Part shown: piece after piece, positions 21,831 through 62,415 of the stretch
How the letters are laid out: every line of letters starts with the position of its first letter
How positions within the stretch are numbered: the first letter of the stretch is position 1
Sequence record: NC_061441.1
DNA length: 64,000 bases
Reading direction: 5' to 3' (one strand)
Notes under the pieces: model-generated
Seen by the model: only the letters and a program-made list of their open reading frames with translations
Databases searched by the model: none
Told to the model about the DNA's origin: nothing
Made by a program: the position numbers and the translations under genes

Positions 21831-23018
21831 TTAAAGTTTACGCAGACCTTTCTTAATGGCCGCTTGCGCTTGAGCCGCTGTAGGGTCTTTCGTCGCAAAC
21901 AGTTCGATAACGTTCTTGATTGATTCCAGCTCACCCAGATGAATCTGAACGTTCTGCACTTTCTTCAAGTGGTCACCGATGAACGTCATCAGCCATCCCT
22001 TCTGCTTCATAACGACGGAAACTTCCAGACCCTTATACTCGAAGGAGAACTGGTTGCCCGTAGTACGAAGCAGTTTAGCAGCGCCCGGTGTAGGCTCAAC
22101 AGCACGGATGAACTTCGGCGCGTACTTGCTGGCTGTCTGAGTACGCAATACTGAGTAAGCAGGGTCGAATGCCACAGCACCCGCAGTCACAGTCGCAGCT
22201 TTCTTACCTTTCGCGCCTGGCGTACCGACTTTGCCGACCAGCTTAGTGATTGCAGCAGCGAAAGCAGCAGGCGTAGGACGACGCAATTCCTGCCCGATTA
22301 CAATACCACCAGTGTTGGTAGTAGCGCCGATATGCCATGAAGTCGAACGCTCGTACTCATGGAACTCATACGGTGGGTCGATATGAATCTCACGGTAGCG
22401 GGCGTTAGGGTTTGCAGCACTGAACGTCCAGTCAGACGACTGACCATTGCTTGGTGTGTGCTCGCCAACAAACGTCAGGCCTGTTGCTTCTGACAACGCG
22501 GCTGCAATAGAATCAATCTGCGTCTGCGTCACGTTGTTCATGAACTTAGGACCGATACGTGCGAGATCGATCTTAGGCAGAGAGGCATTCTGATTAACAC
22601 GCTGCGCTACGACTTTGGCAGGCTTGGTGCCTGTATCGCCTTTAGTTTTAGCGACACGCTGAGGCTTGACAGCGGCTTTGGCCGTATCGTTCGGAGCAGT
22701 CACTTTGATCTTGATTGCACGAAGACCATTGATGGTAGCCACCAGCGTCTTCGCCTTGTACAGGTTCTTGATCGCAGTGACTGCATTTTTACCAGCAGCC
22801 TTCTTCACAAACGCGTTGGTCGCTTCGGTATCTTTCAGGATATCGAGAATGGCTTCGAGCTTAGACGTGTCCAGCTCTTTGATTTTTACCAGCTCGTCGA
22901 TACGCTTGATCAGCACTTTGGCGTTCTTACCAAAGAGGATTTCTGCATTAGCGACCTGAGCTTTGGTGGCAGCAGAGACAGACACCACTGCACCACTGTT
23001 CATTGTCATTTCGTACAT
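21831..23018 (-). CDS. basic Ala/Lys-rich protein with N-terminal SVSA tag, probable internal virion protein
   Basis: 395 aa; VVSVSAATK near the N-terminus; composition. Confidence 0.5.
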   Translation of the reverse strand: MYEMTMNSGAVVSVSAATKAQVANAEILFGKNAKVLIKRIDELVKIKELDTSKLEAILDILKDTEATNAFVKKAAGKNAVTAIKNLYKAKTLVATINGLRAIKIKVTAPNDTAKAAVKPQRVAKTKGDTGTKPAKVVAQRVNQNASLPKIDLARIGPKFMNNVTQTQIDSIAAALSEATGLTFVGEHTPSNGQSSDWTFSAANPNARYREIHIDPPYEFHEYERSTSWHIGATTNTGGIVIGQELRRPTPAAFAAAITKLVGKVGTPGAKGKKAATVTAGAVAFDPAYSVLRTQTASKYAPKFIRAVEPTPGAAKLLRTTGNQFSFEYKGLEVSVVMKQKGWLMTFIGDHLKKVQNVQIHLGELESIKNVIELFATKDPTAAQAQAAIKKGLRKL

Positions 23019-23027
23019 TGCTGTTCC

Positions 23028-23582
23028 TTATCGCTTCTTGGTCCAGTTGGAGTTCTGCTTAGGCTGCTGGTTATTTGCAGGCGCTGGTGCAGGCGTGTTG
23101 TCGTCCTCAATGTCATCTTCTTCATCGTCGATGACTTCTTCTTTTTCAGGCTCAGGCGCTTTCACCTGAGTGTTGAGGACAGATGCTGCGAGTGGTGCTT
23201 GCTGCACTGTATTTACAGTAGCAACAGGCTCTTGCACTGCGGCAGTACGCGCAACAGCAGCTTCACCTACAGCGTGTTCACGGACCATATCAACAGTGAC
23301 CAATTGACCTTTCTCTTTCAAGATCTCATCGGCGCGAGCTTGATCCCACTTGTCCCAAAGAATGTCGAGGCCTTTGTGCATGTAGTTCATGCCGGCAGGG
23401 AGTTTACCACGACCGTTGAAAGGCAGACCGTTCGAAGGAGTAGCTGGCTCGAACTCGTCCATCATCTCCCACTTACGTTTTGCTTCAATACACTTAGGGC
23501 CCCAGACACCGTCACACAGACCATCATAGAGTCCCATCATGGTCATGATAAGCTGGAGCTTCTGGTAGAATTTATTGAGCAT
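23028..23582 (-). CDS. protein with N-terminal peptidoglycan-binding-like domain and low-complexity tail
   Basis: QKLQ...MGLYDGLCDGVWGPKC matches the PG_binding_1 pattern (Q..L...G...DG.fGp.t). Confidence 0.55.
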   Translation of the reverse strand: MLNKFYQKLQLIMTMMGLYDGLCDGVWGPKCIEAKRKWEMMDEFEPATPSNGLPFNGRGKLPAGMNYMHKGLDILWDKWDQARADEILKEKGQLVTVDMVREHAVGEAAVARTAAVQEPVATVNTVQQAPLAASVLNTQVKAPEPEKEEVIDDEEDDIEDDNTPAPAPANNQQPKQNSNWTKKR

Positions 23583-23604
23583 TATGTTTTCCTTGCGGCA
23601 AATG

Positions 23605-23623
23605 AAAGGGGCCGAAGCCCCTT
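23605..23623 (-). terminator. intrinsic terminator
   Basis: AAGGGGC-UUCG-GCCCCUUU. Confidence 0.7.
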
Positions 23624-23629
23624 ATCTGA

Positions 23630-26600
23630 TTACACTGCCTTGTTCTTGGTAGTGGTCAGTTTCAGACGGTCAAGAGCCGTCGTCAACTTCTTGATGTTCG
23701 TGATGTTGTAGCCTGCTTTCACGATCTTGTTGATACGTGCTTTCGCAGTAGCGACATTCTTCACGAAGCCAATCCACATGCCTGGCGACACATCGAAGGT
23801 ACCAAACTTACGAGTGTTCGGAATCTTCGTACCGACGAAACGTTTCATCTGCGGGTTAGTGTTCAGGTCGAACATGATACGCAGACGATCTTCCATTACC
23901 ATCGGGTATGCCTTGACGTGTTTCTTATCAGAGGCTGCCTTGTGACGAATCAGGAAGAACTGTTTCAACTGCTCCTGAGCTTTCAACGCCAGTTTGATGT
24001 TGAAGCCCATACGCGGCGTAGACTCGTCGAAGAAGTCCAGCACGAACTCCAAGCGCTTCTCGGAAGGCTTGTCGAATGCCAGTTTCTTCTTAACCTCAAT
24101 GAAGTCGAGCATCTTCTCGAAGTCTTCATAGTAGGCACAGTCGTAATACACGTAGTCACCGAACTCCACGAAGTCGAATGCCTTGAGGGCTTTCGCATCC
24201 GGGTCGGTAGCGTTCGCGTAAATAGCCACGAAGCCGTTGTACACGGTAGGCGTCAGTTCGAGCGCCATGTCTGCACCAGTCGCTTCTTCGACAGCGGCAG
24301 CAACAGGTTTCTTACGACGAGTCGTGTTGTCCAACACAGGCAGATCAGCAGGCTTACGACGACGAACACGGCCAGCAGCCTCAGCAACACCTTCGTTGAT
24401 TGGCTTACCTTCTGCTTTGTTCGTAGCACGTTGTTTGGCGCGAGCGGTCTTACGCGCTACAGCCACAACCTTCTTCTCTGTCTCAACGGTATCGGCAGTT
24501 TCTGTCTCGTCCTTAATCGTATCTTCAATTTCAATACGATTCGCTTCGGCCGTAGCACGTTTGCGATCTTTCTCGTTCGCCCACGGTTTACGCGCTTCGA
24601 AGAACTTCTTGAGATCAGCCTTGTCGACCTTAGTTGCGATGTGAACTTTGTTGGCAGAAATGCTAACAGTTTCACCTGTACCCGCCAGACGCACACGCAC
24701 CGTGCTGATAGGACTATCTGCACGGAGTTTGCCGTCAACTGTACGCGCAGTCACAGACACGATAACACCATTGCCGTACTCAGTAACGACAGGTGCACGG
24801 TTCAGAGAATCTTTCAGGTTCTCACCGTTCGTGAAGTTGCGGTTACGTGTCCAGTCCAGCAGACGCTCCAGACCCCAGCCGTAGCGATCAGGAATCTTCT
24901 GGTTGGCAACAAACGGAGTCTGCTCCATAACACGGAAGTCGTTCAGCGCCGGCGTAGCGGGTAGTGCCTGCATAGCCGCAACAGTCGTCTTACGCATCTC
25001 ATGGAATTCCTGAGACTCGATTTCGTTCAGGTCGCGCTTGGCAAAGAAGTACTGGGCGAAGTCTTCCATCGTGTTGTTGTCGATGAGCAGTTTCGCGCTC
25101 ATCTTGATCGGGTCCAGTTTGTACTGATCGAGTGCTTCGTAACGCTGGTTGCCCTTCTCATCAAAGCGCGTTTTCTCCAGTGTCTTCCACATCAGACGAG
25201 CGACCTTACCAACTTCAAGGGTCTTGTTCGTCATTACCCAGTCAATGAACACAACCTCACGAGCCATGTCGCCGGGCTTACCGTTCTCGTCCAACTTCGC
25301 AGCAGCAACGTCAGGACGGAAGATACGCGCAGTAGACTGATCGTAAGTACCCGGTGACCACGGAGTATCGCAGCGGATGATACGGCTACCCATCTGCATG
25401 TTGTGGCCTTCGGAGATTGCCTGTTCGTTCGCAATCAGAATCTGGACGTTGTTGTCCGTTTTGAATGCGTCGAGGTTAGCGTCTTTGTTCTGGCCCAGCT
25501 TACCAACTTCACCGTGATACACTACAGCAACTTTCTTGTAGTTCTCAGGCAGAGCGTTGTAGATAGCGTTAGCCGCACGAACGTAGCGCGTGAAGACAAT
25601 CAGCTTGCCCTGCACCTCTGGTTTCCAGTAGTCCGGATCGTCCGGAGGCGGAACCATTGAAGGCGGTAAGGCTTGACGTTTGTACTCTTCGGACTGCTTA
25701 CGTGCCAGATACTTCTGACCGTTGTAGACAGCAATGTCCAGTTCACGAGGAGTAACGCCTGGCTTCCAGTCGAAGATCTGCTGTTCACCAACCATCGGGT
25801 CACGTTCAGGCTGCACTTCGAAGTGCTTCTTGATACGGTCGATAATGGTCAGCACTTTCGCAGATACGAAGTTGGTAACACCAGCGGCTTCAAACGTCAG
25901 ACGTGCAACGTCATCACCCATCGGGTCAGTCAACATCATTTCCATACGCTGGAAGTACATGTTCAGGTCGGCGTTACCTGCAAGCAGTGCGCCCAGGTCA
26001 TCACCTTCCTCGATATCGTCTTCGTCAATGTCGGAAGCGTTATCATCAGCGCCACCAGCATCATCGTCTTCGTCATCGTTACCAGCAGAGGCTTTGCGTT
26101 TCGCAGCGTTGGCCGCGTCTTGCAATTTCTCCAGCACCTGTTCGTACATCGCGTTATACACCTCTTGGTGCAGCGCAGAGTTAGGAACAGACGGGTCATC
26201 GATCTCAACCTGAATGAAGGTGTCAATCGGGTTAGGCAGCATGAACGCCCAGTGCTTACGCTTGAACGAGATGAATGCAGTGTGGTTCGCCATACGAGAG
26301 TGAGCACGACGAATCATTTCGATATCGTCTTTCGCACCATCATACGCAACATCCAGTGAGTCACCGAACATTGCAGGCGTCATCAGCGCGGCCTGACCAA
26401 CGATATCACGCACACGGTCCGTTACCAGCGTACCAGTAGCGATACGAGCATAGCGAACGGACGGAGCAGTGAATACCGCTTTGGTGTTGAAGTGAACCTG
26501 CGAGCCAGCCTGACCACCAGAGAAGTTCTTCACTTTATGCGACTCATCGAGCAGCACATAGCTGAAACGGAAGCGGTTAACGAACTCTACAGCACCACGC

Positions 26601-29479
26601 ACACGAACACGCACACCGCCGATATCAACGTTGAACGTACCAGTCTGGAGGAAGCTCAGGCCAACGATATAGATCGTGTTGCGCGGAGCCTGCTGGATAA
26701 CGTCATACATGCGGTCTTCGCCCCACGTATTAACAGTGTCAGCAGTGATAGGCACTGCGTTCCAACCATCAACAACTTTGTGGAGGTCATCACACCAGTT
26801 CGCTACGAGGTTAGACGGACAGATGATCAGAGGACGAATCGTTTCTTCGCCAAGGTCATCCAGCTCTTTGATTAGAGCAGCAACGTCGGTCAGACCGATG
26901 ATTGTCTTACCGCCACCCGGTGCGATAAAGATTGTTGCGAAGCGTGGACGACGACGCAGAGTTTTGTGCGCTTCAACCTGATGCGGCAGTAACGCTGCAC
27001 CTGCTTTCAGACCTGGGATACGGATATCTTCAATCGTGATACCGCTATCCGGTTTCAGCTTCTCAATCTCCACTTCGGCCTGTTCGAAGTATTCGAGTGA
27101 TTTAGGAATCACGTCGCTGTACATCGTGGCGAACGGCAGAATGATTTGTTGCAGACGGTCAGAGCCTGGGGCCTGTTCGTCTTCAATCAGAGAGCTGAAC
27201 AACTTCTTACGATCACTACGAGCCAGAGCCTGAGTCATCTCACGATACAGCGCGCCACCGAAGTAGTTATTCAGTCGCGCCATGTCAGACAGCTTGGAGC
27301 TTTCACCCATCACGAAGTAGTGAGTGTGGTTCGGCAGAGATTCGGTTGCAGCCTGAATGCTACCCATCTCATTGAGAGAGGTCATAATCAGGTTAGACCC
27401 ACGCAGACCAGCAGCATCGTTCAGCACACGGAGCATCACGCGCATCATCGTCATTGCAGGACGTTCGTTAGCGAGGTCTGGAATTGAGAAGTCGTTCTCA
27501 ATCAGGTTCTGATACAGGTTCTGGTCCATCGGGCTTTCGGCCAATGAAGCATTCTCTGCGTCCATACCGATAGCAACACGCGCCTGCTGCACCAGAGTTT
27601 TCAGATCAGGAACTTGTTTGTTCTTGAGCATGAACTCATAGGTCTGACAGGTAGATGCGATAATCTGCACCAGCTCGTGGAGGTTAGAACCTTCGGTGCT
27701 GTTGTACTTGATGGTGCTGTCCGAAACAGCTTCCACCAGACGGCCAGCGCCAGATTCTGCTTTCGCCGCTTCGATCATCATGTCGTTAGACACTCGATAT
27801 GCAGCCATACCACCAGAAGACTGATTGTGGTGGATGTTACCGATTACGTTAGATGCAGAACGGAAGTTAGGTGCTTCACCAGGCTCTGCGAAGTCGTAGC
27901 CAAGTGAGTCGGCAACGTCCAGAGAGTTCGGCGCTTTCATGCCTACGGTACGTGTCTCTTTAACATCGAGACCGCCACCATTAGACGTGTTCACGATCAG
28001 CGCGAAGTCAGGGTCAATGCCGATGCACACGTTACTGAAACGAGAGAGCGACTTGGCCTTGGTCTGCACTTCACGGTCGAAGTCCAGATTACCGTTCTGA
28101 ATTGCGAACATGTTGGTACGCAGGGTATCGTGCTCGGTGGACAGAGGCACACCCTTTTCGAACAGGTCTTCGAGTACGCTGTTGAGAGAAGACTCGTAGG
28201 TCTTAACCATCTCAATGTCGATATCTTCACGACGAGGAAGCACTGCGAGAGTACCATTCGGCATGATCGTCAGACCGTTATCGTCTGCAACCACATCGTT
28301 TACCACATAGCCAAACTTCTCACGGAGTTTCTTCAACTCAGGCAGAGTGGTGGCCGAGGTAACGTAGCGTGGGATACGCGCAGCACGAGTGATACCAGTA
28401 CGAGTAGAGCCAGCAACACGGAAGTAGTAGCTCGCCCAACCCTGGAACCAACGATACAGACACATGGTCTGCGTGTCAGCGCCCTGAGAGATGTACTCGA
28501 CCATTTCTTTTTCGAAGTTAACGATCAGGCCGCCTTCAACGCGAACGTCAGTAGCGAGAGCGACAGGGTTAAAATCGACAGGCGTATCGTGGCTGATTTT
28601 CATCGCTTGAATCTTGCGATCAATCATCGCCTTGCCTGGGATAGGACGAATACCGATCGTCATGAAATCGCCCAGCGCTTCGGCAGCACCTTTGTCCAGA
28701 TTACGGAACAGGTCGATATCCATGTTGTGCATCAGCGGGTGAATGGAGCGCAGAGCCGCGTTATACACAGTCCAGTCTTTATCGAGAGGAATGCGGACCA
28801 TCTTCGTTTCGAATGCGTTGGAGTTGGTGCGTTCAACGCCGAAGATATCTTTGTACAGAGTCTTCGCCACACGAATCGCAGCCTGTGCAATATCAGAACT
28901 GTAGGTCTGAATGTTGGCACGTTCGAAGTTGGCGTCATTGTCCACACGAGGACGGTCGCTACCCTGATTGTTCAGAACGTTGAAGTTACCGTTCGAGGCC
29001 AGAGGACTTGTCGGGCATGGCGTACCAGACATGATAATGTCACGACCACCTGGGAAGCGCGTACTGTTTTCAATCACGGCACCAGATGCTGCGGACAGGT
29101 GTTCAGCCAGAGAGGTCTTAATCTCACGACTCAACTTGTCGCCGTTCAGTGACATATTGATACGCATGATGGACAGATCGATGTTGTTCTTAACACGCTT
29201 AACAAAATCGTCTGGCGCTACTTCCAGCATGTCTTCGAACTCTGCACCGTTGGTAACGATGTAGTTGATCAAATCGAATGCGGCGTAGATGCGAGCAACG
29301 GTAGATGCGGTGAACACTGCAAGGGTTTCGTAGTTACGACGAGACTTCCCTGTAGCGTACATTTTCGACATTTTACCATCGAACTCGGGCGGCAACGTCT
29401 TCACAGCCAGAGCCTGATTAAACGTATCGGCGATCTGCTGGGTTGCGGTTGCTGAGGTACTGATCATTTGATTCATCAT
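23630..29479 (-). CDS. giant SNF2-family helicase/translocase (1949 aa)
   Basis: LLPHQ (Q motif), APGGGKT, LLDESHKVK, IATGT, GHNMQ, PWSP...DQSTARIFR; N-terminal ISTSA tag. Confidence 0.85.
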   Translation of the reverse strand: MMNQMISTSATATQQIADTFNQALAVKTLPPEFDGKMSKMYATGKSRRNYETLAVFTASTVARIYAAFDLINYIVTNGAEFEDMLEVAPDDFVKRVKNNIDLSIMRINMSLNGDKLSREIKTSLAEHLSAASGAVIENSTRFPGGRDIIMSGTPCPTSPLASNGNFNVLNNQGSDRPRVDNDANFERANIQTYSSDIAQAAIRVAKTLYKDIFGVERTNSNAFETKMVRIPLDKDWTVYNAALRSIHPLMHNMDIDLFRNLDKGAAEALGDFMTIGIRPIPGKAMIDRKIQAMKISHDTPVDFNPVALATDVRVEGGLIVNFEKEMVEYISQGADTQTMCLYRWFQGWASYYFRVAGSTRTGITRAARIPRYVTSATTLPELKKLREKFGYVVNDVVADDNGLTIMPNGTLAVLPRREDIDIEMVKTYESSLNSVLEDLFEKGVPLSTEHDTLRTNMFAIQNGNLDFDREVQTKAKSLSRFSNVCIGIDPDFALIVNTSNGGGLDVKETRTVGMKAPNSLDVADSLGYDFAEPGEAPNFRSASNVIGNIHHNQSSGGMAAYRVSNDMMIEAAKAESGAGRLVEAVSDSTIKYNSTEGSNLHELVQIIASTCQTYEFMLKNKQVPDLKTLVQQARVAIGMDAENASLAESPMDQNLYQNLIENDFSIPDLANERPAMTMMRVMLRVLNDAAGLRGSNLIMTSLNEMGSIQAATESLPNHTHYFVMGESSKLSDMARLNNYFGGALYREMTQALARSDRKKLFSSLIEDEQAPGSDRLQQIILPFATMYSDVIPKSLEYFEQAEVEIEKLKPDSGITIEDIRIPGLKAGAALLPHQVEAHKTLRRRPRFATIFIAPGGGKTIIGLTDVAALIKELDDLGEETIRPLIICPSNLVANWCDDLHKVVDGWNAVPITADTVNTWGEDRMYDVIQQAPRNTIYIVGLSFLQTGTFNVDIGGVRVRVRGAVEFVNRFRFSYVLLDESHKVKNFSGGQAGSQVHFNTKAVFTAPSVRYARIATGTLVTDRVRDIVGQAALMTPAMFGDSLDVAYDGAKDDIEMIRRAHSRMANHTAFISFKRKHWAFMLPNPIDTFIQVEIDDPSVPNSALHQEVYNAMYEQVLEKLQDAANAAKRKASAGNDDEDDDAGGADDNASDIDEDDIEEGDDLGALLAGNADLNMYFQRMEMMLTDPMGDDVARLTFEAAGVTNFVSAKVLTIIDRIKKHFEVQPERDPMVGEQQIFDWKPGVTPRELDIAVYNGQKYLARKQSEEYKRQALPPSMVPPPDDPDYWKPEVQGKLIVFTRYVRAANAIYNALPENYKKVAVVYHGEVGKLGQNKDANLDAFKTDNNVQILIANEQAISEGHNMQMGSRIIRCDTPWSPGTYDQSTARIFRPDVAAAKLDENGKPGDMAREVVFIDWVMTNKTLEVGKVARLMWKTLEKTRFDEKGNQRYEALDQYKLDPIKMSAKLLIDNNTMEDFAQYFFAKRDLNEIESQEFHEMRKTTVAAMQALPATPALNDFRVMEQTPFVANQKIPDRYGWGLERLLDWTRNRNFTNGENLKDSLNRAPVVTEYGNGVIVSVTARTVDGKLRADSPISTVRVRLAGTGETVSISANKVHIATKVDKADLKKFFEARKPWANEKDRKRATAEANRIEIEDTIKDETETADTVETEKKVVAVARKTARAKQRATNKAEGKPINEGVAEAAGRVRRRKPADLPVLDNTTRRKKPVAAAVEEATGADMALELTPTVYNGFVAIYANATDPDAKALKAFDFVEFGDYVYYDCAYYEDFEKMLDFIEVKKKLAFDKPSEKRLEFVLDFFDESTPRMGFNIKLALKAQEQLKQFFLIRHKAASDKKHVKAYPMVMEDRLRIMFDLNTNPQMKRFVGTKIPNTRKFGTFDVSPGMWIGFVKNVATAKARINKIVKAGYNITNIKKLTTALDRLKLTTTKNKAV

Positions 29480-29983: not shown

Positions 29984-30766
29984 CTAGATAAAAATGCTCT
30001 TGACCAGAGAGTTGAGTCGCTTTTCCACGGCGTGTCGTTTGTGTGTCGTAAGGAAACAGCACATACGGCGCGACTGTAGATGCAGCGCAATGGCATTGCC
30101 CTTGACGCGAGCGCAGTCAATCCCAAGGTCAATGTTCCACGGATGCCAAGCACGAGGTGCAAGCATCACCTGTTGGATGTTCGGATAAGTGTCCATCAAT
30201 ACAGGAATCGCAGACTTTGCCAGTTTCTTGGTCAAATTATCAGTTTTGAACAAAGCCTTAGGCTGTTTGTTCGAAAACCAGTACGGAACCTGCTTGTGGA
30301 GTATCTCCCCGACTTTAGGAATGCCACCACGAGTAGTCTGAGGCACATACACCAGATAGATATCGATCGTGGTGTTGATGCAGTTCGCTACGCGGTTGTA
30401 ATCGCTGTTAGTACGCGAATGCACCTCGGCCAGTCTGAACTTATTGCTGAACTCGATACGCTGCAACCACTGGCGCAAGTCCTGGTGCTGCAACTTGAGA
30501 AGGACACGGGCCTGCTCCAGAGAATGCTTAGTCACAGACGGGATTGGGCGTATCAGATACTTCGTGGTAGTCTTAGACAGCGAGGACATGAAGCCTTCAA
30601 CAACACGCTGCATACCAAGAGGCTGCGGCAGTGAGTGAAAGAGATCGACTGCGGTTTGGGTTGTGATGTACGAACCCCACGCCTCAATATACTCAGGGTC
30701 AATGCAGTCTGGGAAAGCACGTAGGTTCAATCCTACTTCGGAGCCATATGTTTTCAAACGACTCAC
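29984..30766 (-). CDS. hypothetical protein
   Basis: 260 aa; coupled to the HNH gene; GGAGG RBS. Confidence 0.55.
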   Translation of the reverse strand: MSRLKTYGSEVGLNLRAFPDCIDPEYIEAWGSYITTQTAVDLFHSLPQPLGMQRVVEGFMSSLSKTTTKYLIRPIPSVTKHSLEQARVLLKLQHQDLRQWLQRIEFSNKFRLAEVHSRTNSDYNRVANCINTTIDIYLVYVPQTTRGGIPKVGEILHKQVPYWFSNKQPKALFKTDNLTKKLAKSAIPVLMDTYPNIQQVMLAPRAWHPWNIDLGIDCARVKGNAIALHLQSRRMCCFLTTHKRHAVEKRLNSLVKSIFI

Positions 30767-31128
30767 TTTCTACCTCCGTGAAGCAATCGAGAGCCGCGTC
30801 GGTTTGCAGTACCGATTTGGTTATTGTCGCACGTATAGCACAGCAGTTCAAGGTTATGCTTCATGTTAGAACCACCATTGGCATGTGCAACTTTATGGTT
30901 GAGAATCAATTCGCGTGTGGGCTTACCACAGCGCTCGCAGTAGTAACCGCGCTCGTCGATGATGCTCATCTTGAGTTTGGTCCAGTCTGCTCTGTCCATG
31001 CGAACGTGTGTACCTGCTCGGGCACGTTCAAATCCCGTTACGCCAGCAAGACGTTGGGAAGTAGACAGAGTACGTCCACGTCCACCTTGCGTTCGAGCGG
31101 CGATGCCGCCTCTTGGTCTGTATGCCAT
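30763..31128 (-). CDS. HNH endonuclease (Zn-binding, gp74/McrA-like)
   Basis: CERCG...LNHKVAHANGGSNMKHNLELLCYTC. Confidence 0.8.
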   Translation of the reverse strand: MAYRPRGGIAARTQGGRGRTLSTSQRLAGVTGFERARAGTHVRMDRADWTKLKMSIIDERGYYCERCGKPTRELILNHKVAHANGGSNMKHNLELLCYTCDNNQIGTANRRGSRLLHGGRK

Positions 31129-31150
31129 GATGTTCTCCTAAATACAATGA

Positions 31151-31159
31151 TATTTACAG
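31151..31159 (-). promoter_or_regulatory. class 1 motif CTGTAAATA
   Basis: 23 nt upstream of the HNH start. Confidence 0.55.
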
Positions 31160-31161
31160 AC

Positions 31162-31974
31162 TTATGCAGAGGCGGAGAAGATCTGTACCGTCTTATCCAG
31201 ACCAGCTTGATAGGACTGTTCGATATCTTTGGCTGAACGGCTGATAATCTGCTTAGTTGAGTTAGACGCAGCAGCAATCAATTCAACAGGCAGATTCTTT
31301 TTGTTCCATGCGTTAATCTGGTGGAATACTGAAACGAGAACGGTACCAGCAGACTCGGCGAACGGACCAAGCACCTCAGCATTGAGGATCTCAGCCAACT
31401 GACCAACATCGCGCAGCGCACGAAGGTCAGCAATGATTTCGCGCATCTGGTCATAGAGTTTCATCAGCGCATAAATATCACGACTCTGTTTCTTTTGCAG
31501 GTACAGGTTTTCGCACTCACGCGCCATAGCCTGACACTGCTTGAACATGGTCATGTATTCTTGAATCTGGTCATTCTCCTGCTTGATGGCGTCAGGGATA
31601 TCAGCCATGACCTCCATCAATTGACCCTCAAGCACTGCAACATCAGTGCCAAGCGCTTTCCTGTCTTTCTTTTTCTTCTTCTTGATGACCTCTACGGCGT
31701 TCTCTTTTTTCTTTTTCTTCTTCGCTTTCGGTTTGTCTTCAATGGAAGCGATTGCCTTTTGGGTACTGGCGATATCAGCGTAAAGTTCTTCTGGGTTAAG
31801 CACACCAGGCATGATATCACTCGAAGGGTCTTTCTTTTTCTTCTTTTTGACCTTCACGCCTTTGCTAACTGTCTTAGCTTTAACGGCGGTGGTCTTAGCT
31901 TTCACTTTCGCTTTGCCTTTCTTTTTAGCAGGCTGTGCGTAAGAGCCAATGTCATCCAAGCTTATGGCCGCCAT
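31162..31974 (-). CDS. Lys-rich N-terminus / helical C-terminus protein (possible small terminase or DNA-binding protein)
   Basis: 270 aa with poly-K runs; function is inference only. Confidence 0.45.
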   Translation of the reverse strand: MAAISLDDIGSYAQPAKKKGKAKVKAKTTAVKAKTVSKGVKVKKKKKKDPSSDIMPGVLNPEELYADIASTQKAIASIEDKPKAKKKKKKENAVEVIKKKKKKDRKALGTDVAVLEGQLMEVMADIPDAIKQENDQIQEYMTMFKQCQAMARECENLYLQKKQSRDIYALMKLYDQMREIIADLRALRDVGQLAEILNAEVLGPFAESAGTVLVSVFHQINAWNKKNLPVELIAAASNSTKQIISRSAKDIEQSYQAGLDKTVQIFSASA

Positions 31975-31996
31975 GTGAAAATCCTCTGTAGAAACG

Positions 31997-32024
31997 AAAA
32001 AGGGAACCCCGCGAGGCTCCCTTT
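31997..32024 (-). terminator. intrinsic terminator
   Basis: AGGGAGCC...GGUUCCCU plus U tract on the minus strand. Confidence 0.65.
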
Positions 32025-32033
32025 AGGGTTTGA

Positions 32034-32840
32034 TTAGAAGCTGTGACCTTTGATGATACCAGCAATCTTGCTGTAGTAGTCCGGGCTATAACGGAATACC
32101 TGAGCGTAATAGCTCAACAGCTTAGGCACGTCAACGCCAGCAGCGGCAGACACGCTATCGACAGCAGGGAACTGGTTAGGGTCCAGCTCGTCACCAGACA
32201 GTACAGCAACCATAGACATGGAGCTGATCTGTTCTTCGTTACCCTGCTCGTCAACCACCAGCATGGTGTTGTCGTCGGTAACGTTAGCAGCAACGAAACC
32301 AACTTTCAGGTCACCGCTGTTTGATACGAAGCTGATCATATCGCCACCAACAGCAGCAGCCAGAATCGCTTCATTGCGCATGATAGCCTGAGCCAGTTCA
32401 GGACGCTGGGCAGCGAAGTTAACGCTCTGTGCGCCACTGACAGAACGAATCATATCGATCAGTTCGGCGTTGTCGTTAGCAGAGCTATCGCGTACCAGAA
32501 CGTCTTCGCCAGATTCAGAACGACGAACATGCCACATGCGCTCGCTCTTGTCCATGTACATGTTCTTAGACAGTGCCTGGAACTGGTCGCCCATCTGAGA
32601 CACAGGAATGATATCCTGCATACGGTTCATGATGGTGCGCACGAAGCTGGTGGTCTTGCCGCCTTCGATCAGAGTCGAAGCGCCTTCAACTGGCAGGAAC
32701 TCGCGGTCGCATGAAGCGCTCACGATTGCGCCGAAGTTGTCAGCGATGTTCTCACCGTGTGAGTGAGTTAATTGCACGATAGCCACGCTCTGGTTGTCGT
32801 TGAGCTGGTCAATCTGTTTGATGAAAGCCTTCATTGTCAT
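32034..32840 (-). CDS. probable virion/head-associated protein
   Basis: 268 aa; class 2 motif upstream; internal DSVSAAA. Confidence 0.45.
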   Translation of the reverse strand: MTMKAFIKQIDQLNDNQSVAIVQLTHSHGENIADNFGAIVSASCDREFLPVEGASTLIEGGKTTSFVRTIMNRMQDIIPVSQMGDQFQALSKNMYMDKSERMWHVRRSESGEDVLVRDSSANDNAELIDMIRSVSGAQSVNFAAQRPELAQAIMRNEAILAAAVGGDMISFVSNSGDLKVGFVAANVTDDNTMLVVDEQGNEEQISSMSMVAVLSGDELDPNQFPAVDSVSAAAGVDVPKLLSYYAQVFRYSPDYYSKIAGIIKGHSF

Positions 32841-32863
32841 CTCCTGAATAGTTCGACAATATG

Positions 32864-32870
32864 AAATTAG
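32864..32870 (-). promoter_or_regulatory. class 2 motif CTAATTT
   Basis: 24 nt upstream of start 32840. Confidence 0.55.
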
Positions 32871-32881
32871 TATTTCGAGGG

Positions 32882-34045
32882 TTAGCCAGTGACGCGATAA
32901 CGTGCATTGACCCAGATACTGCGGTTACCAACAGTAGCCCATTTGGTGGTTGGGCTGTTTGTGATGCCGAGCTTGCCGAGTGAACGTGCACCGTCAATCG
33001 CATTGGCACCCTGAGAACCATCACCGTCGTTTATTCCGGCTTTAGACAGCTTGTTCTTCAAGTTCGTAACAGGACCTTGTATCTCTGTCTCAAGTCTGCC
33101 TAACGCAGATTCAATTGACGGAGTACGGTCCATGTTTAAGTTAACGACCTGACCTGTGAAGTCAAACGCTAACTGACCCTCTGCCTGTAGTTGCGCGGCG
33201 AGAGCGTAATACGAAGCGCAGATAACCCAACCGTTAAGAATGGTTCCCTGCATGTTCGTACCGTTGAAGCCTGTAACACGAGGACCAATCGTGTTGAACA
33301 ACGCAAGTCCACGATACAGGTAGTTCATGATATCAGCCTGGGTGTATTCCAACTCAGGGATAACGTTCATTGCTCGGGCTTTGTTGATGTGGTCTTCAAC
33401 CATTGACGCTGCGATAAGAATCTGCGGCGTTACAACCCAGAGCTTGTACGTGAACATCTTCGTGGTCTTGCGTGTGTTCGAAGTATGCTGTGCGATTAAG
33501 CTGATAGGCTCCAATCGACGAACAGCAACCCAGACAGGAATCTGGAACACGCAGGTCTTGGCGCGATTCACAACCATCTTCACACCAGAATCGCCAGAGT
33601 CGATATCAGATGCGATGATTTGGTTGTTGAGTGCCAGTTGGAATTTCAGCTTATCGCCGCGCGTGTCGTAGTGAAACGGTAACGTCATCTCAAACGTTTC
33701 GTCATCACCGAACAGGCATACGATATCTGTCACACGGTTTTCAGTCAGTGGCTCAACGATGAGTTCCTGACGAGACTGCATGATTCCTTCTTCGGACTCA
33801 TAGCGCCATGAAAGCAGCAGACGCTTATCGTCCACCAGCCCCATGTTCGGCACGGCAACATCAGCGGTCCATGCGCCAGGAATTTCACCAGGCGTTGCAA
33901 CCACTTGAGCCAGTACCGATCTATCTTCGGGGTCAATGAGGCTTACTACAGGCCCCATGTCATCCGATAGTGGGTACAGTGGTTCGTCGAGGTCGTTATA
34001 GAAACTCTCCTCGACTACCAGTACGTTACCTTCTGTTGTGCGCAT
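32882..34045 (-). CDS. putative neck / head-tail adaptor protein
   Basis: C-terminal helical adaptor-like region (YLYRGLALFN...DFTGQVVNLNMDRT); start moved to MRTTEG next to the upstream stop. Confidence 0.45.
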   Translation of the reverse strand: MRTTEGNVLVVEESFYNDLDEPLYPLSDDMGPVVSLIDPEDRSVLAQVVATPGEIPGAWTADVAVPNMGLVDDKRLLLSWRYESEEGIMQSRQELIVEPLTENRVTDIVCLFGDDETFEMTLPFHYDTRGDKLKFQLALNNQIIASDIDSGDSGVKMVVNRAKTCVFQIPVWVAVRRLEPISLIAQHTSNTRKTTKMFTYKLWVVTPQILIAASMVEDHINKARAMNVIPELEYTQADIMNYLYRGLALFNTIGPRVTGFNGTNMQGTILNGWVICASYYALAAQLQAEGQLAFDFTGQVVNLNMDRTPSIESALGRLETEIQGPVTNLKNKLSKAGINDGDGSQGANAIDGARSLGKLGITNSPTTKWATVGNRSIWVNARYRVTG

Positions 34046-34046
34046 A

Positions 34047-35153
34047 TCAGTCTGCCTTAGTGAGTCCCAGATACTCAATCAGATTGCGTAGCTGGTCGTT
34101 ATACCCACCTTCGATTAGCGCTCTCGCCATTGACACGTGGTTGGAGTTCGCTGTACGCACTACCTTAGCCTGATAGTCAGGAACGTTTTGCATGTTCTGA
34201 TTCAGGTTGTAGAAGTAGCTACGCACGAAGTTCGTTCGTTCCACGTTACTCGCTTCCATGTCACTGGTGTCCTGTGTAGGAGTCAGCAACAGGTAGAGGG
34301 CAGCAAGCAGTTCAGGACTCTGGTCAACAATCGGCGAGGCGAGCGAAGCAGCAATCTTCATCAGGCCTTTTGCAACGAAGTCAACCACAGTCTTCTCGAT
34401 GTACGCCGTGCCAGCTTTGCCAACGTTAGGCAGATACAGGCCAGGCAGAATGAAGATACAGAAGTACAGCGGAAAGTCTTTACGCATCACGTCGGGGATA
34501 AGCATCTCCGAGTAATCTTTCCAGATGTTCACGTTGAAGTGCCACTCATCGTATGGCACTGTACGCATCAGGTTCGATACCGATAGGTCTTTCACTTGGT
34601 TCGCCTGCGATGCAAGATCGCGAGCGCTCTGCGAAGGAGCAAGGTTCGAACTCGATACCAGTTGAACGTAGTTGCGAGTGACAACACCCACAGTGTTATA
34701 CGTCACATTCAACATCTCAACGCCGTTACCGTTCAGGCCGAAGATAACAGAACGAGGAAGACCGATAGTGATGTACTCGTTGTTATTGTCCACGCCCCAC
34801 AAGCGCCAGTAACGCCCGCGACCAAGTTGAGTCATAGGCTGCGGGAGAATACGGTTGGCGCGAGCTTTCAGGCAGAACGTGAAACAGATACCGCTGTCAA
34901 TCATAATCACCGAATCATCTGGACGATTCGAATAACCCATCGACATATCGTTATCGGTACTGTACACGTTTACCAGAGTGAAGTTCTGAGCCTTAGTGAA
35001 AGGCATCTGCGCTTCAATCAAATAGCCGAGGACTTGTCGCAGGATAGTATCGAGCACATAAGGAGAAGCAGAACGCATTTGCTGTGGACGGTACTGACCA
35101 CTATACGTGTTCTCCTTGAATGTGCGATCTACCTTGAAGTGCGTCAACGCCAT
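34047..35153 (-). CDS. hypothetical protein, probably structural
   Basis: 368 aa in an operon behind a class 2 motif; TAATG coupling. Confidence 0.5.
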   Translation of the reverse strand: MALTHFKVDRTFKENTYSGQYRPQQMRSASPYVLDTILRQVLGYLIEAQMPFTKAQNFTLVNVYSTDNDMSMGYSNRPDDSVIMIDSGICFTFCLKARANRILPQPMTQLGRGRYWRLWGVDNNNEYITIGLPRSVIFGLNGNGVEMLNVTYNTVGVVTRNYVQLVSSSNLAPSQSARDLASQANQVKDLSVSNLMRTVPYDEWHFNVNIWKDYSEMLIPDVMRKDFPLYFCIFILPGLYLPNVGKAGTAYIEKTVVDFVAKGLMKIAASLASPIVDQSPELLAALYLLLTPTQDTSDMEASNVERTNFVRSYFYNLNQNMQNVPDYQAKVVRTANSNHVSMARALIEGGYNDQLRNLIEYLGLTKAD

Positions 35154-36442: not shown

Positions 36443-36480
36443 GATCATCCTCTACTGGGTCTATTATTCATGTCGAGTAA

Positions 36481-36487
36481 AAATTAG
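36481..36487 (-). promoter_or_regulatory. class 2 motif CTAATTT
   Basis: 39 nt upstream of start 36442. Confidence 0.55.
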
Positions 36488-36613: not shown

Positions 36614-37285
36614 TTAAACGACTACTTTACCTTTTGCTTTGGTCTTAGCGGCTTTCTTGCCACCAGCTTTCTGCGCTGCGGTACCTTTGTGCTTAACGAC
36701 TTTAGCAGTGGTTTCTTTACCACCTTTCAGACGCGGCATTGGTTTCAGCTTAGGCTTGACCAGAGTTACGGCTTTCGGTGCTACTTTCGGAGTCACCAGT
36801 TTGCCGTCTTTGATGCTTGGCTTACGTGCTTTGCGCGCGGCCAGACGAGCTTTCTGTTTCAGGATCAGGTTTTTGTAACCAGCTTTCTGTTTAGCAGCCA
36901 GGTTGCTCTTAGCAACAGCCTGACGTTTCAGCAGGAGCTTACGCACTTTACCCTGGGAAACAGCGGTCGCTTTCAGGCCAGCCTGGTATTTAGCCAGACG
37001 TTCCTTCAGGCGCTGCTCGATGGTTTTCGCTTTGCCTTTCTTAGCCTGCTTACGCAGGTGAGTTGCACGTTCGTTGTCGTACTTCTTCTCGGAAGCGGTA
37101 CGCTTCGGTGCAGCTTTCTTAGGCTTAGCAGCCTTAGGTGCAGCGGTTTTCTTCGCAGCTTTCGGCTTAGCAGCCTTAGGAGCAGCGGCTTTCTTCGCAG
37201 CAGGTTTTTTACCAGCGGCTTTCTTAGCCTTGGAGCCGCCTTTAACCGGGTCGGTCGGGGAAGTGGTTTTGCGTTTTACGGCCAT
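36614..37285 (-). CDS. histone H1/HC2-like Lys/Ala-rich DNA-binding protein
   Basis: 223 aa; KKAAAPKAAKPK-type repeats; extremely basic. Confidence 0.75.
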   Translation of the reverse strand: MAVKRKTTSPTDPVKGGSKAKKAAGKKPAAKKAAAPKAAKPKAAKKTAAPKAAKPKKAAPKRTASEKKYDNERATHLRKQAKKGKAKTIEQRLKERLAKYQAGLKATAVSQGKVRKLLLKRQAVAKSNLAAKQKAGYKNLILKQKARLAARKARKPSIKDGKLVTPKVAPKAVTLVKPKLKPMPRLKGGKETTAKVVKHKGTAAQKAGGKKAAKTKAKGKVVV

Positions 37286-37355
37286 GATTATATCCTCAAG
37301 TTACAATTGAACTTTCGTCCTTCGGGACATTAAAGTTTTTGAAATCAGCATGTAA

Positions 37356-37362
37356 AAATTAG
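37356..37362 (-). promoter_or_regulatory. class 2 motif CTAATTT
   Basis: in the AT-rich intergenic region upstream of the histone-like gene. Confidence 0.5.
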
Positions 37363-40430: not shown

Positions 40431-40459
40431 GATGTTTCTCGTTATTCGGGTGTTACGAA

Positions 40460-47265: not shown

Positions 47266-47313
47266 TGTGTATCACCTCAATGGTCTGTCGAAGGTACTAC
47301 GCGCTTGTGCCTA

Positions 47314-47320
47314 AAATTAG
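47314..47320 (-). promoter_or_regulatory. class 2 motif CTAATTT
   Basis: 49 nt upstream of 47265, right after a terminator. Confidence 0.55.
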
Positions 47321-51860: not shown

Positions 51861-51890
51861 AAAAAGAAGGGCCACCGTTAGGCAGCCCCT
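51861..51890 (-). terminator. intrinsic terminator
   Basis: GGGCUGCC-UAAC-GGUGGCCC plus U-rich tail. Confidence 0.6.
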
Positions 51891-52162
51891 GCGAATACTT
51901 TGCGCACCCCGTTATCCAGATAGTGATCTGCATAGAAGGGTCCATTTTCGTTTTCAATACCAATGCGCCTACATAGCTGACGACGTAAGCGTCTAGGCCA
52001 TACCAGCTCATCTTCAATCAGATGGATGACAGCCGGTAGTGCTTCCAGTTGCGTCATAGTCAGGTCACGAATCTTGTCGTCAATGCGACACAGCTCCGCA
52101 TAGTCCTGTTCAGGTGTTGGTACGTTGCGCACAGGCTTAGAAAGATCTACGGTGAGTTCCAT
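51878..52162 (-). CDS. hypothetical protein
   Basis: 94 aa; GGAG RBS. Confidence 0.55.
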   Translation of the reverse strand: MELTVDLSKPVRNVPTPEQDYAELCRIDDKIRDLTMTQLEALPAVIHLIEDELVWPRRLRRQLCRRIGIENENGPFYADHYLDNGVRKVFAGAA

Positions 52163-52608
52163 CAGTATCTCCGTGGCTTCTTAGGTTTCTTGATAGTGGA
52201 TTTAGGGCGCTTGATTGCTCTCAGAGCTTTACGCGCTTCAATAATCTGCTTGGACAATTCAGAGCGACGAGCCTTAATCTGGTCAGTGTCTTGCTCAGTG
52301 CCTTTGAGTTTATCAAGGCGATTCCATTCTTTGACCAGACGATCAACTACACCAGCACGAGACACGCGCTGCTGATTGGTACGCACAATGTCCTGCTGCG
52401 TCTTCACCGAATCGCGTGTACGATTAACTTCTTCACGCGCTGACTTAACGCCTTTGGTATCACCCTCAGATTGTTTGTCGTTCAGCTTCTTACGCGCTAA
52501 CTGCGAGCGGCGTTGTGCTCCCTTGAGATCATCTTTCGAATTGTCCAAGGAGACTTGAGTATCTTCGAGCGGGCTGGTACGCGCACTCAAACTGATAAGT
52601 ATCTTCAT
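52162..52608 (-). CDS. basic coiled-coil protein with MKILISLSA tag
   Basis: 148 aa; GAGG RBS. Confidence 0.55.
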   Translation of the reverse strand: MKILISLSARTSPLEDTQVSLDNSKDDLKGAQRRSQLARKKLNDKQSEGDTKGVKSAREEVNRTRDSVKTQQDIVRTNQQRVSRAGVVDRLVKEWNRLDKLKGTEQDTDQIKARRSELSKQIIEARKALRAIKRPKSTIKKPKKPRRY

Positions 52609-52622
52609 AAGACCTCAAAACG

Positions 52623-52648
52623 AAAAAGGGCGACCCGAAGGCCACCCT
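52623..52648 (-). terminator. intrinsic terminator
   Basis: AGGGUGGCC-UUCG-GGUCGCCCU plus U tract. Confidence 0.7.
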
Positions 52649-52739
52649 GTGTAGAATGGCGCGCTATGCACCCGACTGGCTAGGTCTACTACGATTATTT
52701 AACCTCGCAGTAGTGAGCGAGGAGATGGGGATCACCTCC

Positions 52740-53276
52740 TCATGCGGATTGAAGTTGAAGAATTTCTTCGTCTTCGATATCCGCGCCAGACCACGAACGA
52801 ATCACGGATGCGTTTCCACGATTGCCTGTCAGCATCATCTTAACTGATGGCTTGGCATCGCGTTCTGCGTAATAGTCGGCGAGAGCTTTCTCTGTACCGA
52901 ACCATAAAATGGAGTGACCACCCTTAGGGCAGATCAAGAATTGAGTAGGACGTTGTGGAACGTTCAACGTCAGATAGAAGTCACCAGCGCCAGTAGGACC
53001 AAGCATTGGCATAGGCTTCATGATCTGCTGAAAGTCTCCAGCATCTTTAAGACGTGTATCGCCCAACAACCAGATAGCACCTTCTTCGCCCTCACGCACA
53101 GCACTCAAGGTACCTTTACGTGTTGTGATAGAGCCGAAAGTGTCTTGATCGAAACGGGCTAGACCGAAGATGAGTGATGCGAGTTTCTTCAGGTCAGGGG
53201 TCGTGCATGGACTATCAATTTTGGCCATGCCCTCGGACCCTACTGTAATCTTCGAGAGTGATACAAAGATTTCCAT
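52740..53276 (-). CDS. hypothetical protein with MEIFVSLSK tag
   Basis: 178 aa; class 2 motif upstream. Confidence 0.55.
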   Translation of the reverse strand: MEIFVSLSKITVGSEGMAKIDSPCTTPDLKKLASLIFGLARFDQDTFGSITTRKGTLSAVREGEEGAIWLLGDTRLKDAGDFQQIMKPMPMLGPTGAGDFYLTLNVPQRPTQFLICPKGGHSILWFGTEKALADYYAERDAKPSVKMMLTGNRGNASVIRSWSGADIEDEEILQLQSA

Positions 53277-53312
53277 ATTGTCTTCCAGAGCTGTATGATT
53301 AATTGTGGTATA

Positions 53313-53319
53313 AAATTAG
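53313..53319 (-). promoter_or_regulatory. class 2 motif CTAATTT
   Basis: 37 nt upstream of 53276, after a terminator. Confidence 0.55.
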
Positions 53320-61424: not shown

Positions 61425-61455
61425 TTGGACCTCAAAACATGCGTTTCGTGGGTGA

Positions 61456-61464
61456 TCTTTACAG
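61456..61464 (-). promoter_or_regulatory. class 1 variant CTGTAAAGA
   Basis: 32 nt upstream of ATG 61424. Confidence 0.45.
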
Positions 61465-61755
61465 AATCCGTCTTTTTCTCGTGGTATGGAACTCAAATTG
61501 CATCATCAGATTAGGTAGATAGGAGATATCAGCATGTTCATGCAGCATGAGCGCACTATAGTCACAAGAAATCAGCAGTCTGAAACCAGAACCCTGCTCC
61601 CAGGAAGCATATCCCTTTGAAATAACCATGCCGAAACAGGCGAAAACGTACAACCTTGAATAGACTGGTTATTTGGTGTCAATGCAGAGGATTCTTAATC
61701 CCAGCATGTGGACGTGCAAAGGGAGTGCTCCCGGGATGAATCTACAGGAAAGTGG

Positions 61756-62415
61756 TTATTTTTTGCGCGAAACGCGCTTACCCAGTTTTACACCGATTTG
61801 CGTCATAATGCGCTTCACGGTCTCTCCGTCATGGTCCTCAATGGCGTTTGCGAGTTTTTCGCCCTGCTCGCGTGAAAGCTCAGGCATAATCAGTTTTAGC
61901 ATCTGCGAACGCATTTTCGCAGACTTTGATTTGCCGCGTGATAGAGATTGTGTGTCCATTTCGTTTGCAACACGGCTCATGGTGCGCTGCACACGACGAT
62001 CTGCGAAGATATCAGCAAAGATATTGCCGAACAGGTCCTGGAACGAACGTCCACCGCCCATAATGTCGTCTTTTGTGAAACGAACAGGCTGTCCAAGCGC
62101 ATTCTGCTTATTGCAGTGCGTGGATTCCACTTCGTTTTGAGTACGTCCACCAGCACGGAAGTTCTCATCAGGGCGTGACGCTTTACCCTCTGCGCCTGGT
62201 TTAGTGTTGCCGTTGCGCAGATCTGCATCGCCTTCAACAGCCTTATCTGGGTCGAACATGTCGTCCGCTGTCTCGCTTTGGTTAGCGTCAAACGGAATCT
62301 TGCCCGTCAGCTTATTCGGGTCAGGCCAGCTCTTTGGAATATCAGAAGCAGGTTGCGCTTTGTTCGTCATATCGCCGTTAGCTTCGCTATTCAGGCTGAT
62401 CATAATACGTGCCAT
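61756..62415 (-). CDS. hypothetical protein with a MARIMISLNSEA tag variant, probably virion-associated
   Basis: 219 aa; AGGAG RBS; in operon behind a class 2 motif. Confidence 0.5.
   Translation of the reverse strand: MARIMISLNSEANGDMTNKAQPASDIPKSWPDPNKLTGKIPFDANQSETADDMFDPDKAVEGDADLRNGNTKPGAEGKASRPDENFRAGGRTQNEVESTHCNKQNALGQPVRFTKDDIMGGGRSFQDLFGNIFADIFADRRVQRTMSRVANEMDTQSLSRGKSKSAKMRSQMLKLIMPELSREQGEKLANAIEDHDGETVKRIMTQIGVKLGKRVSRKK

Follow-up and report, generated by a model that had tools for sequence, protein, structure and literature searches.

What function is served by a short N-terminal sequence that is shared by otherwise unrelated proteins of a jumbo phage? This question arises from a stretch of 64,000 nucleotides of sequence record NC_061441.1, which is referred to as the window (the whole stretch that was analyzed; window position = record position − 124,000). 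The window is 100% identical to the Erwinia amylovora jumbo phages pEa_SNUABM_16 and pEa_SNUABM_18 (Alexandravirus, 266.8 kb) and carries 69 annotated genes (gp156–gp224), all on the minus strand. Its phage group also includes Pseudomonas phages PaBG and Lu11, NCTB, Dickeya phages JA11/13/29/33 and AD1, and Erwinia phages Y3, Yoloswag, and Alexandra (PMC7412058). A sequence-only reading of the window had regarded the shared N-terminus as an analog of the capsid-targeting sequence (CTS) of T4 that marks a cargo proteome. Our analysis supports this view through the presence of the motif in the portal and capsid proteins, the virion proteins of PaBG, a promoter-like motif, the boundary between the leader and the domain behind it, and an exchange of leaders between lineages. 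From these patterns and the analogy with T4, we estimate a probability of roughly 0.7 that the shared N-terminus is a leader for targeting to the virion, most likely to the capsid, and for maturation cleavage.

Enrichment of the motif at protein N-termini

The strong form of the tag, M-x-I-Phi-[VI]-S-L-S-[AK] (Phi, hydrophobic residue), opens five proteins in the window. They are gp191 (MEIMVSLSA at 40404–40430; gene 38550–40430, 626 residues, no assigned function), gp197 (MQIFVSLSA at 43866–43892; gene 43383–43892, 169 residues, an effector-type module), gp199 (MQIFVSLSK at 45409–45435; gene 44830–45435, 201 residues), gp211 (MKILISLSA at 52582–52608; gene 52162–52608, 148 residues), and gp212 (MEIFVSLSK at 53250–53276; gene 52740–53276, 178 residues). 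The eleven N-termini listed in the sequence-only reading, which include these five, were all found where it had placed them, on the minus strand and with RefSeq start codons. Only details of two starts should be noted: the annotated start of gp180 is at 29476, one codon farther downstream, and that of gp197 is TTG.

When M-x-I-Phi-[VI]-S-L-S is back-translated into a degenerate DNA pattern, the window contains exactly five matches, while 0.08 are expected. None of 100 shuffles reached five, and the rest of the 267 kb genome outside the window contains no match. The serine codons in the five copies are AGT, AGC, TCC, TCA, TCT, or TCG, covering both the AGY and TCN families, and most of the synonymous sites differ. 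This variation in codons and synonymous sites shows that selection acts on the peptide, not on the DNA.

The enrichment is also clear at the protein level. S-x-S-[AK] occurs within the first 20 residues of 12 of the 69 window proteins against 1.07 expected from the internal frequency, and the comparison with shuffled controls proposed earlier gave a mean of 0.62 and a maximum of 3. The pattern [VILMF][VIAS]-S-x-S-A has eight N-terminal matches, whereas a single one is found in 18,663 internal positions of the window proteins. When the next residue is left free, the first 20 residues contain [VILMF][VILMAS]-S-x-S in 10 of the 69 proteins (0.65 expected). Without the five strong copies, this looser motif still gives 5 against 0.61 expected, with p about 4e-4, and such p-values are optimistic since the motif was set after looking at the sequences. 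The S-x-S core of the previously described S-x-S-[A/K] tag is thus real, but the tag is better described as Phi-(Phi)-S-x-S, the residue behind it being variable.

Anatomy and conservation of the leader

The short form of the leader consists of eight residues, M-x-[IVL]-Phi-[VI]-S-[LIM]-S. In a logo of 55 distinct sequences, the positions are occupied by M, [EQK], I, [FLTY], V, S, L, and S, followed by a variable residue (K, A, V, R, S, N, M, or Q). The long form has 14–18 residues, M-x-L-I-[KR]-[IL]-N-[IL]-x-[DE]-x-Phi-x-S-x-S-[AS], and is carried by gp198 (MALIRINIADSLVSESA at 44769–44819; gene 43896–44819, 307 residues), gp200 (MTLIKLNLDESVASTSAN at 45720–45773; gene 45435–45773, 112 residues), gp253, and the Y3 ortholog of gp178 (MSLIKLGNLDGDVVESTSA). 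Long-form variants in JA29, L028, and Yen9-02 resemble a degenerate short tag with another Phi-x-S-x-S behind it. A hydrophobic start and S-x-S are the elements that do not vary in the leader. The position behind the second serine is unconstrained, as would be expected at P1′.

The tag is retained in orthologs from Y3, Yersinia phage fHe-Yen9-02, JA29, and 15 IMG/VR genomes, even in cases in which the remaining protein is 25–36% identical. The JA29 ortholog of gp199, for example, starts with MEILVSISA at 25% identity, and S-E-S-A of gp198 is kept in 15 distinct orthologs with identity as low as 25%. Orthologs of gp191 in JA29 start with MEIQVSLSA and MEIEVSLSA, and its paralogs in contig L033 with MLHISTSAL and MINISTSAL. 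Among 35 ortholog pairs with an overall identity of 80% or less, the identity is 0.78 in residues 1–8, 0.53 in residues 9–16, and 0.60 in residues 17–44, the tag being better conserved than the sequence behind it.

The position of the tag relative to the domain behind it should be noted. An exhaustive HMMER search with the gp197 domain gave 84 relatives, most of which align from residue 9–13 onward; many of the relatives are embedded in proteins of 2,291–5,144 residues. In an AlphaFold2 model of gp197 (built from a 10-sequence alignment; best model with a predicted local distance difference test score (pLDDT) of 73 and a predicted template modeling score of 0.69, the other four being poor), residues 1–9 are without secondary structure and have pLDDT values below 50, and residue 11 is the first of the fold. 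According to the model and the remote homologs, the tag is located outside the folded and homologous domain.

Candidate processing sites in head proteins

The portal protein gp006 contains D-F-V-S-Q-S-A at residues 48–54. Among 119 homologs (identity down to 45%), Ser51 and Ser53 show 91% conservation each and are both present in 107, and position 49 is hydrophobic in 114. The neighboring columns, which belong to a variable and indel-rich N-terminal linker, are 13–24% conserved. In the capsid protein gp143, L-V-H-S-T-S-A is found at residues 63–69. The S-x-S at residues 66–68 directly follows a family-wide G-x-Phi-V and is present in all 27 homologs with at least 70% identity, and another S-x-S (residues 33–35) is part of a family-wide A-L-S-x-S-T-G-E (residues 31–38). 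The gene of gp145 (L010:9343–11367) is located in the interval from the capsid gene to the protease gene. The protein contains five S-x-S-[AK] sites, and seven S-x-S sites are present in its homolog from PaBG. Though annotated as an "ATPase", gp145 gives no Pfam match; instead of an ATPase, it may be a scaffold or core protein that is cleaved at several places. We regard the S-x-S sites in the portal, capsid, and gp145 proteins as candidate processing sites, at which cleavage would take place. A jumbo phage in which the portal protein as well as the capsid protein is processed at the N-terminus is SPN3US (PMC10052503), which sets a precedent.

Inside the window, 7 of the 11 internal Phi-Phi-S-x-S sites fall in the gp182–gp188 module (29984–36442, minus strand) around the head-tail connector gp186. 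The internal sites of gp182 and gp185 are conserved in Y3. The distribution of the sites suggests that this module probably encodes head-associated substrates.

The predicted enzyme is gp147, annotated as the head maturation protease (PHROG 18299, E = 2.6e-126). Its gene lies in the capsid-scaffold gene block, and the protein is 95% identical among phages whose other proteins are ~80% identical.

Some further features of these head genes are as follows. The portal homologs P0163 and P0211 (~1,080 residues) contain intein and LAGLIDADG domains (PF14890 and PF14528), therefore some relatives have portal inteins. An HNH endonuclease gene, gp183 (30763–31128), is located among the head-associated genes of the window. 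It is found at the same position in Y3 (Y3_179) and PaBG (gp199), and is thus an old resident, not a recent homing insertion.

Counterparts of tagged proteins in the virion of PaBG

The largest tagged protein in the window is gp180, an SNF2-type helicase of 1948 residues (MNQMISTSA at 29450–29476; gene 23630–29476), and its Y3 ortholog starts with MINISTSA. The PaBG ortholog, PaBG gp202, is 29% identical over 1,966 residues and starts with MGSLFTLNSLSA, giving an LNSLSA leader. This 221 kDa helicase-like protein was identified as band 1 of the PaBG virion gel, and band 9 was identified as gp83 (PMC7412058, Table 1), which starts with MLIKINLLEAVAAKA (MLIKINLLEAV...), a long-type leader. Several virion proteins of PaBG are proteolytically processed, and the capsid protein loses ~20% of its mass (PMC7412058). 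As for other members of the group, the Y3 GenBank record has no flags for proteins detected by mass spectrometry, and the Dickeya phage paper contains no proteomics.

The observations in the preceding sections are consistent with the following mechanism. The hydrophobic and strand-like start of the leader would dock the protein either to the core of the prohead during assembly or to the portal. Phi-x-S-x-S would then serve as the site of the head maturation protease, which is predicted to cut after the second serine and before the variable residue, as judged from the conservation pattern and the analogy to T4. The mature protein would be released inside the head and would leave with the DNA at infection.

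One more possible internal head protein should be mentioned in connection with PaBG. gp189 (36614–37285) is a Lys/Ala-rich basic protein that has its own promoter-like motif CTAATTTT (described below) and no N-terminal S-x-S tag. PaBG gp191, which has a similar basic N-terminus and is encoded at the same place just after sbcD (gp190 in the window), is a processed virion protein. This resemblance makes gp189 a possible internal head protein associated with the DNA.

Exchange of leaders between phage lineages

Standalone members of the gp197 family carry different leaders. When the sequences are anchored on the conserved Y-R-G motif, six of them have an S-L-S tag (e.g., MKIFVSLAS, MRIIISLSG, and MKLILSMSA), and 12 have an M-K-x-F-x-x-F-[IL]-x-E leader at the same position. 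The layout of the latter fits the published CTS of T4, which is 10–19 residues long with targeting at residues 4 and 7 and processing at residues 8 and 10 (PMC9026906). Two of the 12 were traced, and both are in T4-like contigs, L032 (Pfam T4_baseplate, gp2, gp53, gp5, gp25, and gp6) and L056 (Gp23, Portal_T4, T4-gp15, and T4_gp19).

In L056, seven clustered small genes have the M-K-x-F-x-x-F-[IL]-x-E leader and are arranged like a T4-type internal-protein locus. One of them encodes an ART-PolyVal (PF18760) protein. Homologs of this protein are found in JA29 (BLASTP, 5.5e-16) and in L033 (1.9e-11), a 230 kb jumbo-phage contig with six clustered tagged genes, and they start with MELLISLSK and MKIQLSMSK, respectively. 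Because the gp197 and ART-PolyVal families swap the T4-type leader for the S-L-S leader according to the lineage, the two leaders would do the same job. This swap in two independent effector families is the strongest argument for equal function of the leaders.

The gp197-family and ART-PolyVal genes are adjacent both in the jumbo-phage contig L033 (9275–10519) and in the T4-like contig L056 (10001–11031). This arrangement suggests a conserved two-gene effector pair that may move between lineages.

The sequence-only reading had also listed an ART-like sequence among the tagged proteins. For gp197, there is no Pfam match, and an assignment as ART-like is based on the conserved Y-R-G motif and on Foldseek matches in PDB that are not significant (best matches, RES and ParT toxins; E ≥ 0.29, template modeling score about 0.4). 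The description is therefore weakly supported for the window protein, though true ART-PolyVal proteins are tagged in the relatives.

A promoter-like motif upstream of tagged genes

The promoter-like motif CTAATTTT is located upstream of gp191 (40459–40466, minus strand). Further copies in the window belong to gp188 (36480–36487), gp189 (37355–37362), gp202 (47313–47320), and gp212 (53312–53319, 43 nt upstream of the short tag). Of seven copies in the genome, six are intergenic, and four of these six are ahead of the tagged genes gp188, gp191, gp212, and gp253. The shorter CTAATTT is found 30 times genome-wide, 29 times on the coding strand and mostly in intergenic regions. It precedes the portal operon, the tail genes gp113/114, the PAAR gene gp117, gp139, gp145, gp153, and, via gp125, gp124. 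CTAATTT(T) is located 20–75 nt upstream of the start codons, and looser copies are found near 13596–13603, 32863–32870, and 63554–63561.

These positions make CTAATTT(T) a likely late-promoter element in this group of phages, whose genes include one for a sigma factor (gp245). Because CTAATTT resembles a late-type promoter, the tagged genes are probably coexpressed with the virion parts. GC-rich hairpins with T-runs, which look like terminators, are present immediately upstream of gp211 (~52615–52660) and gp191 (~40470–40500), and similar ones precede gp137 and gp154, which lie outside the window.

Extent of the predicted cargo set

In addition to the proteins described above, less regular leaders are found in the window. 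gp210 has a degenerate short tag (MELTVDLSK at 52136–52162; gene 51878–52162, 94 residues), and its ortholog in L028 begins with the canonical MKRFVSLSN. In gp178, VVSVSA is located at residues 11–16 (leader at 22971–23018; gene 21831–23018, 395 residues). In gp188, VSSISA is found at the same residues (11–16; leader at 36395–36442; gene 35153–36442, 429 residues), with a second candidate site, LLSVSA, at residues 57–62. The gp188 orthologs retain S-x-S with varying next residues (SIS-T, STS-I, and SAS-V). gp223 (MARIMISLNSEA at 62380–62415; gene 61756–62415), which the sequence-only reading had counted as a variant, contains no S-x-S. Its Y3 ortholog has the same MISLNSEA sequence, but the entire N-terminus is conserved between them, and membership of this uncertain variant is not supported.

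Outside the window, tags at RefSeq starts are found in gp124, a NUDIX protein (MMINVSLSA), gp137 (MLILLSESA), gp153 (MILSVSA), and gp253 (MSLIKIEGVQSLSA). Among the ~200 small genes on the plus strand outside the window, gp253 is the only one with a tag, and one other, gp297, has an ordinary Sec signal peptide. Both gp137 and gp153 have a KMPT-N domain (PF20294), and the tag directly precedes the domain in both. The predicted cargo set amounts to ~15 proteins, gp124, gp137, gp153, gp178, gp180, gp188, gp191, gp197, gp198, gp199, gp200, gp210, gp211, gp212, and gp253.

Two observations on members of this set may be added. gp137, gp153, and gp146 (L010:2847–3521, 18695–20557, and 11445–12578, respectively) all have KMPT-N; gp146 is untagged and adjoins the head protease, and a tblastn search gave no match between gp146 and a PaBG virion protein. 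In fHe-Yen9-02 (L008:10001–11674), a gp199-like and a gp198-like protein are fused in frame in an open reading frame of 557 residues, so that the gp198-type leader MKITLSLCSDVISESA is internal, at residue 223. The fused frame could be a natural two-cargo polyprotein, or it could contain an internal start site.

Alternative explanations

Several observations weigh against a targeting and cleavage leader. The motif definition is partly post hoc, though the effect is large nonetheless. The structural model of gp197 is of moderate quality, with one good model out of five. The capsid S-x-S at residues 66–68 is present in 12 of 87 homologs with less than 55% identity, and the ~20% loss of the PaBG capsid protein is not at a conserved S-x-S. 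Comparison of the capsid site with the cargo tags in PaBG is ambiguous, since the capsid protein does not have S-x-S at residues 66–68, while the helicase and the portal keep it. PaBG gp83 has A-A-K-A in place of S-x-S, and targeting or docking and cleavage may therefore be separable. The virion evidence for tagged proteins is taken from the literature on a relative, PaBG. Finally, gp147 gives no Pfam match (E ≤ 10) and no PDB sequence match; hhalign against T4 gp21 gives a probability of ~1%, and the AlphaFold2 model (pLDDT 44) is unusable.

The last points bear on the protease, and they leave some room for a rather unlikely alternative, in which the leader targets the virion but stays uncleaved or is cut by a protease other than gp147, with gp218 as a candidate. 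gp147 could not be placed in any protease family, gp218 is annotated as a peptidase, and the PaBG homolog of gp218 (PaBG gp182) is annotated as a Zn-metalloprotease. The long leader of PaBG gp83 without S-x-S would fit such a case, and polyvalent proteins are often processed by metallopeptidase domains (PMC5512222). However, an invariant S-x-S with a variable next residue, found as the same motif in the portal linker and gp145, looks like a protease site used across head proteins, and the gene position and high conservation of gp147 point to this protein. An improbable explanation is that the leader serves a purpose unrelated to the virion, for example as a degron for timed turnover, a handle for a chaperone or assembly factor, a translation-efficiency element, or an export signal. 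The tagged NUDIX protein and helicase indeed resemble ordinary metabolic and replication enzymes, and the packaging evidence comes from PaBG. Contrarily, the synonymous variation rules out an mRNA element, and the helicase ortholog is a major band of the PaBG virion. In addition, the motif is conserved in the portal, the promoter-like motif is common to structural operons, and T4-like phages have a T4-type capsid-targeting leader at that very position. A Sec signal peptide was rejected: the leader is only eight residues in total and has no hydrophobic core, and the true signal peptide of gp297, MKFTAIAIALVMSASASA, is quite different.

It is hardly credible that the tag is a product of chance, a DNA repeat, or a remnant of a paralog family with a conserved first β-strand, even though the five strongest copies lie within 13 kb. 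The observed five copies are far above the chance level given above. A DNA-level repeat and an artefact of a promoter or ribosome-binding site were rejected because different codons are used for the same residues. Hidden paralogy was rejected on the basis of alignments, Pfam, PHROGs, and the domain boundaries of remote homologs. As the sequence-only reading had held, the downstream sequences are unrelated: alignment detects no similarity past residue 9, and the Pfam and PHROG assignments are different or absent. The remote gp197 homologs, moreover, align from residue 9–13 and carry other leaders, and the tag is disordered in the model.

Comparison with known systems

The proposed targeting and cleavage leader resembles the CTS of T4, which is present on IPI–III and Alt and is removed by gp21. 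Both are short sequences located at the very N-terminus of small proteins that are otherwise unrelated, turn over rapidly, and are encoded in clusters. Both have a hydrophobic or aromatic front and end in two fixed residues (i and i+2) followed by a variable residue, and effectors of the gp197 and ART-PolyVal families carry one leader or the other depending on the lineage. They differ in the fixed residues, which are [LI]-x-Glu in T4 and Ser-x-Ser without Glu here, and in length (10–19 residues in T4 and eight here). The motif is present in the portal here, whereas T4 gp20 is listed as uncleaved (PMC9026906). Packaging and cleavage are predicted from sequence here, and the local protease has no detectable similarity to gp21. 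By analogy, the system appears to work like the CTS, but it uses another motif, belongs to another lineage, and probably depends on another protease specificity.

In phiKZ, 201phi2-1, and SPN3US, many head and ejection proteins, including portal and capsid proteins, lose N-terminal propeptides at a common short motif (prohead protease gp245 in SPN3US). The SPN3US propeptides are mostly 111–254 residues long, two being short (20 and 24 residues), and are cut after Glu in an A-x-E-type motif (PMC10052503). The motif here is S-x-S instead of [AGS]-x-E, and the leaders of this phage, which belongs to the PaBG/Lu11/Y3 lineage, have 8–18 residues. The repertoire of ART-PolyVal, NUDIX, SNF2 helicase, and KMPT-N, and the presence of the gp197 domain in giant proteins, are reminiscent of polyvalent proteins, which are predicted to be packaged and injected (Iyer et al. 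2017, PMC5512222). Unlike these, most of the proteins here are separate small effectors, each with its own leader, not parts of one giant polypeptide. Sec signal peptides (A-x-A) similarly have small residues at −3 and −1 before the cleavage point, but a positive n-region and a hydrophobic core of 7–15 residues are not found here, and the cargo consists of cytoplasmic-type enzymes.

A more specific proposal is about evenly balanced in our judgment. It holds that the PaBG/Lu11/Y3/Alexandra lineage has a Ser-x-Ser head protease, unlike the Glu-specific T4 and phiKZ types, that the 8-residue leader is a complete and portable signal for packaging and release, and that anti-host effector domains (ART-PolyVal, the gp197 family, and others) pass between unrelated lineages of phages and are refitted with the leader of the recipient. 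Under this proposal, a one-line regular expression would read the injected proteome of the phage group, including the 220 kDa SNF2 helicase and the NUDIX hydrolase. No mention of the tag peptides or of a CTS in this phage group was found in the full-text literature (subscription papers such as the Y3 description were outside the search), and the leader is not described in comparative papers on polyvalent proteins or jumbo phages.

If the leader functions as proposed, it would provide a sequence rule that predicts the packed and delivered proteins in a group with ~80% hypothetical genes. Likely counter-defense enzymes (NUDIX, ART-type domains, and the giant SNF2 helicase) would be among the predicted cargo. 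The maturation protease would have a new specificity, with Ser at P1 and P3. The leader swap suggests exchange of effectors across lineages, with re-addressing by a leader of about ten residues, which would be a general principle in the evolution of injected proteomes. The 8-residue tag could also be used to load reporter proteins into these capsids, as the T4 CTS was used earlier.

Untagged genes in the cargo gene cluster

Untagged genes are found among the tagged ones. gp193 (41029–41919), gp195 (42335–43162), and gp202 (46381–47265) encode proteins of ~275–296 residues with a common N-terminus, M-Q-Y/F ... [IV]-[LF]-F-F-D. This type of N-terminus is also present in Y3 and Yen9-02, and gp202 has the CTAATTTT motif noted above. 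From these N-termini, the three look like a paralog family. gp192 (40489–41007), labeled "GTP-binding domain" in RefSeq, gives a borderline YpsA SLOG match of 27.6 bits, just below the Pfam gathering cut-off of 27.7 bits. gp194 (41960–42325) has a Tlde1 domain (PF10908). Both gp192 and gp194 are untagged and located inside the cargo gene cluster.

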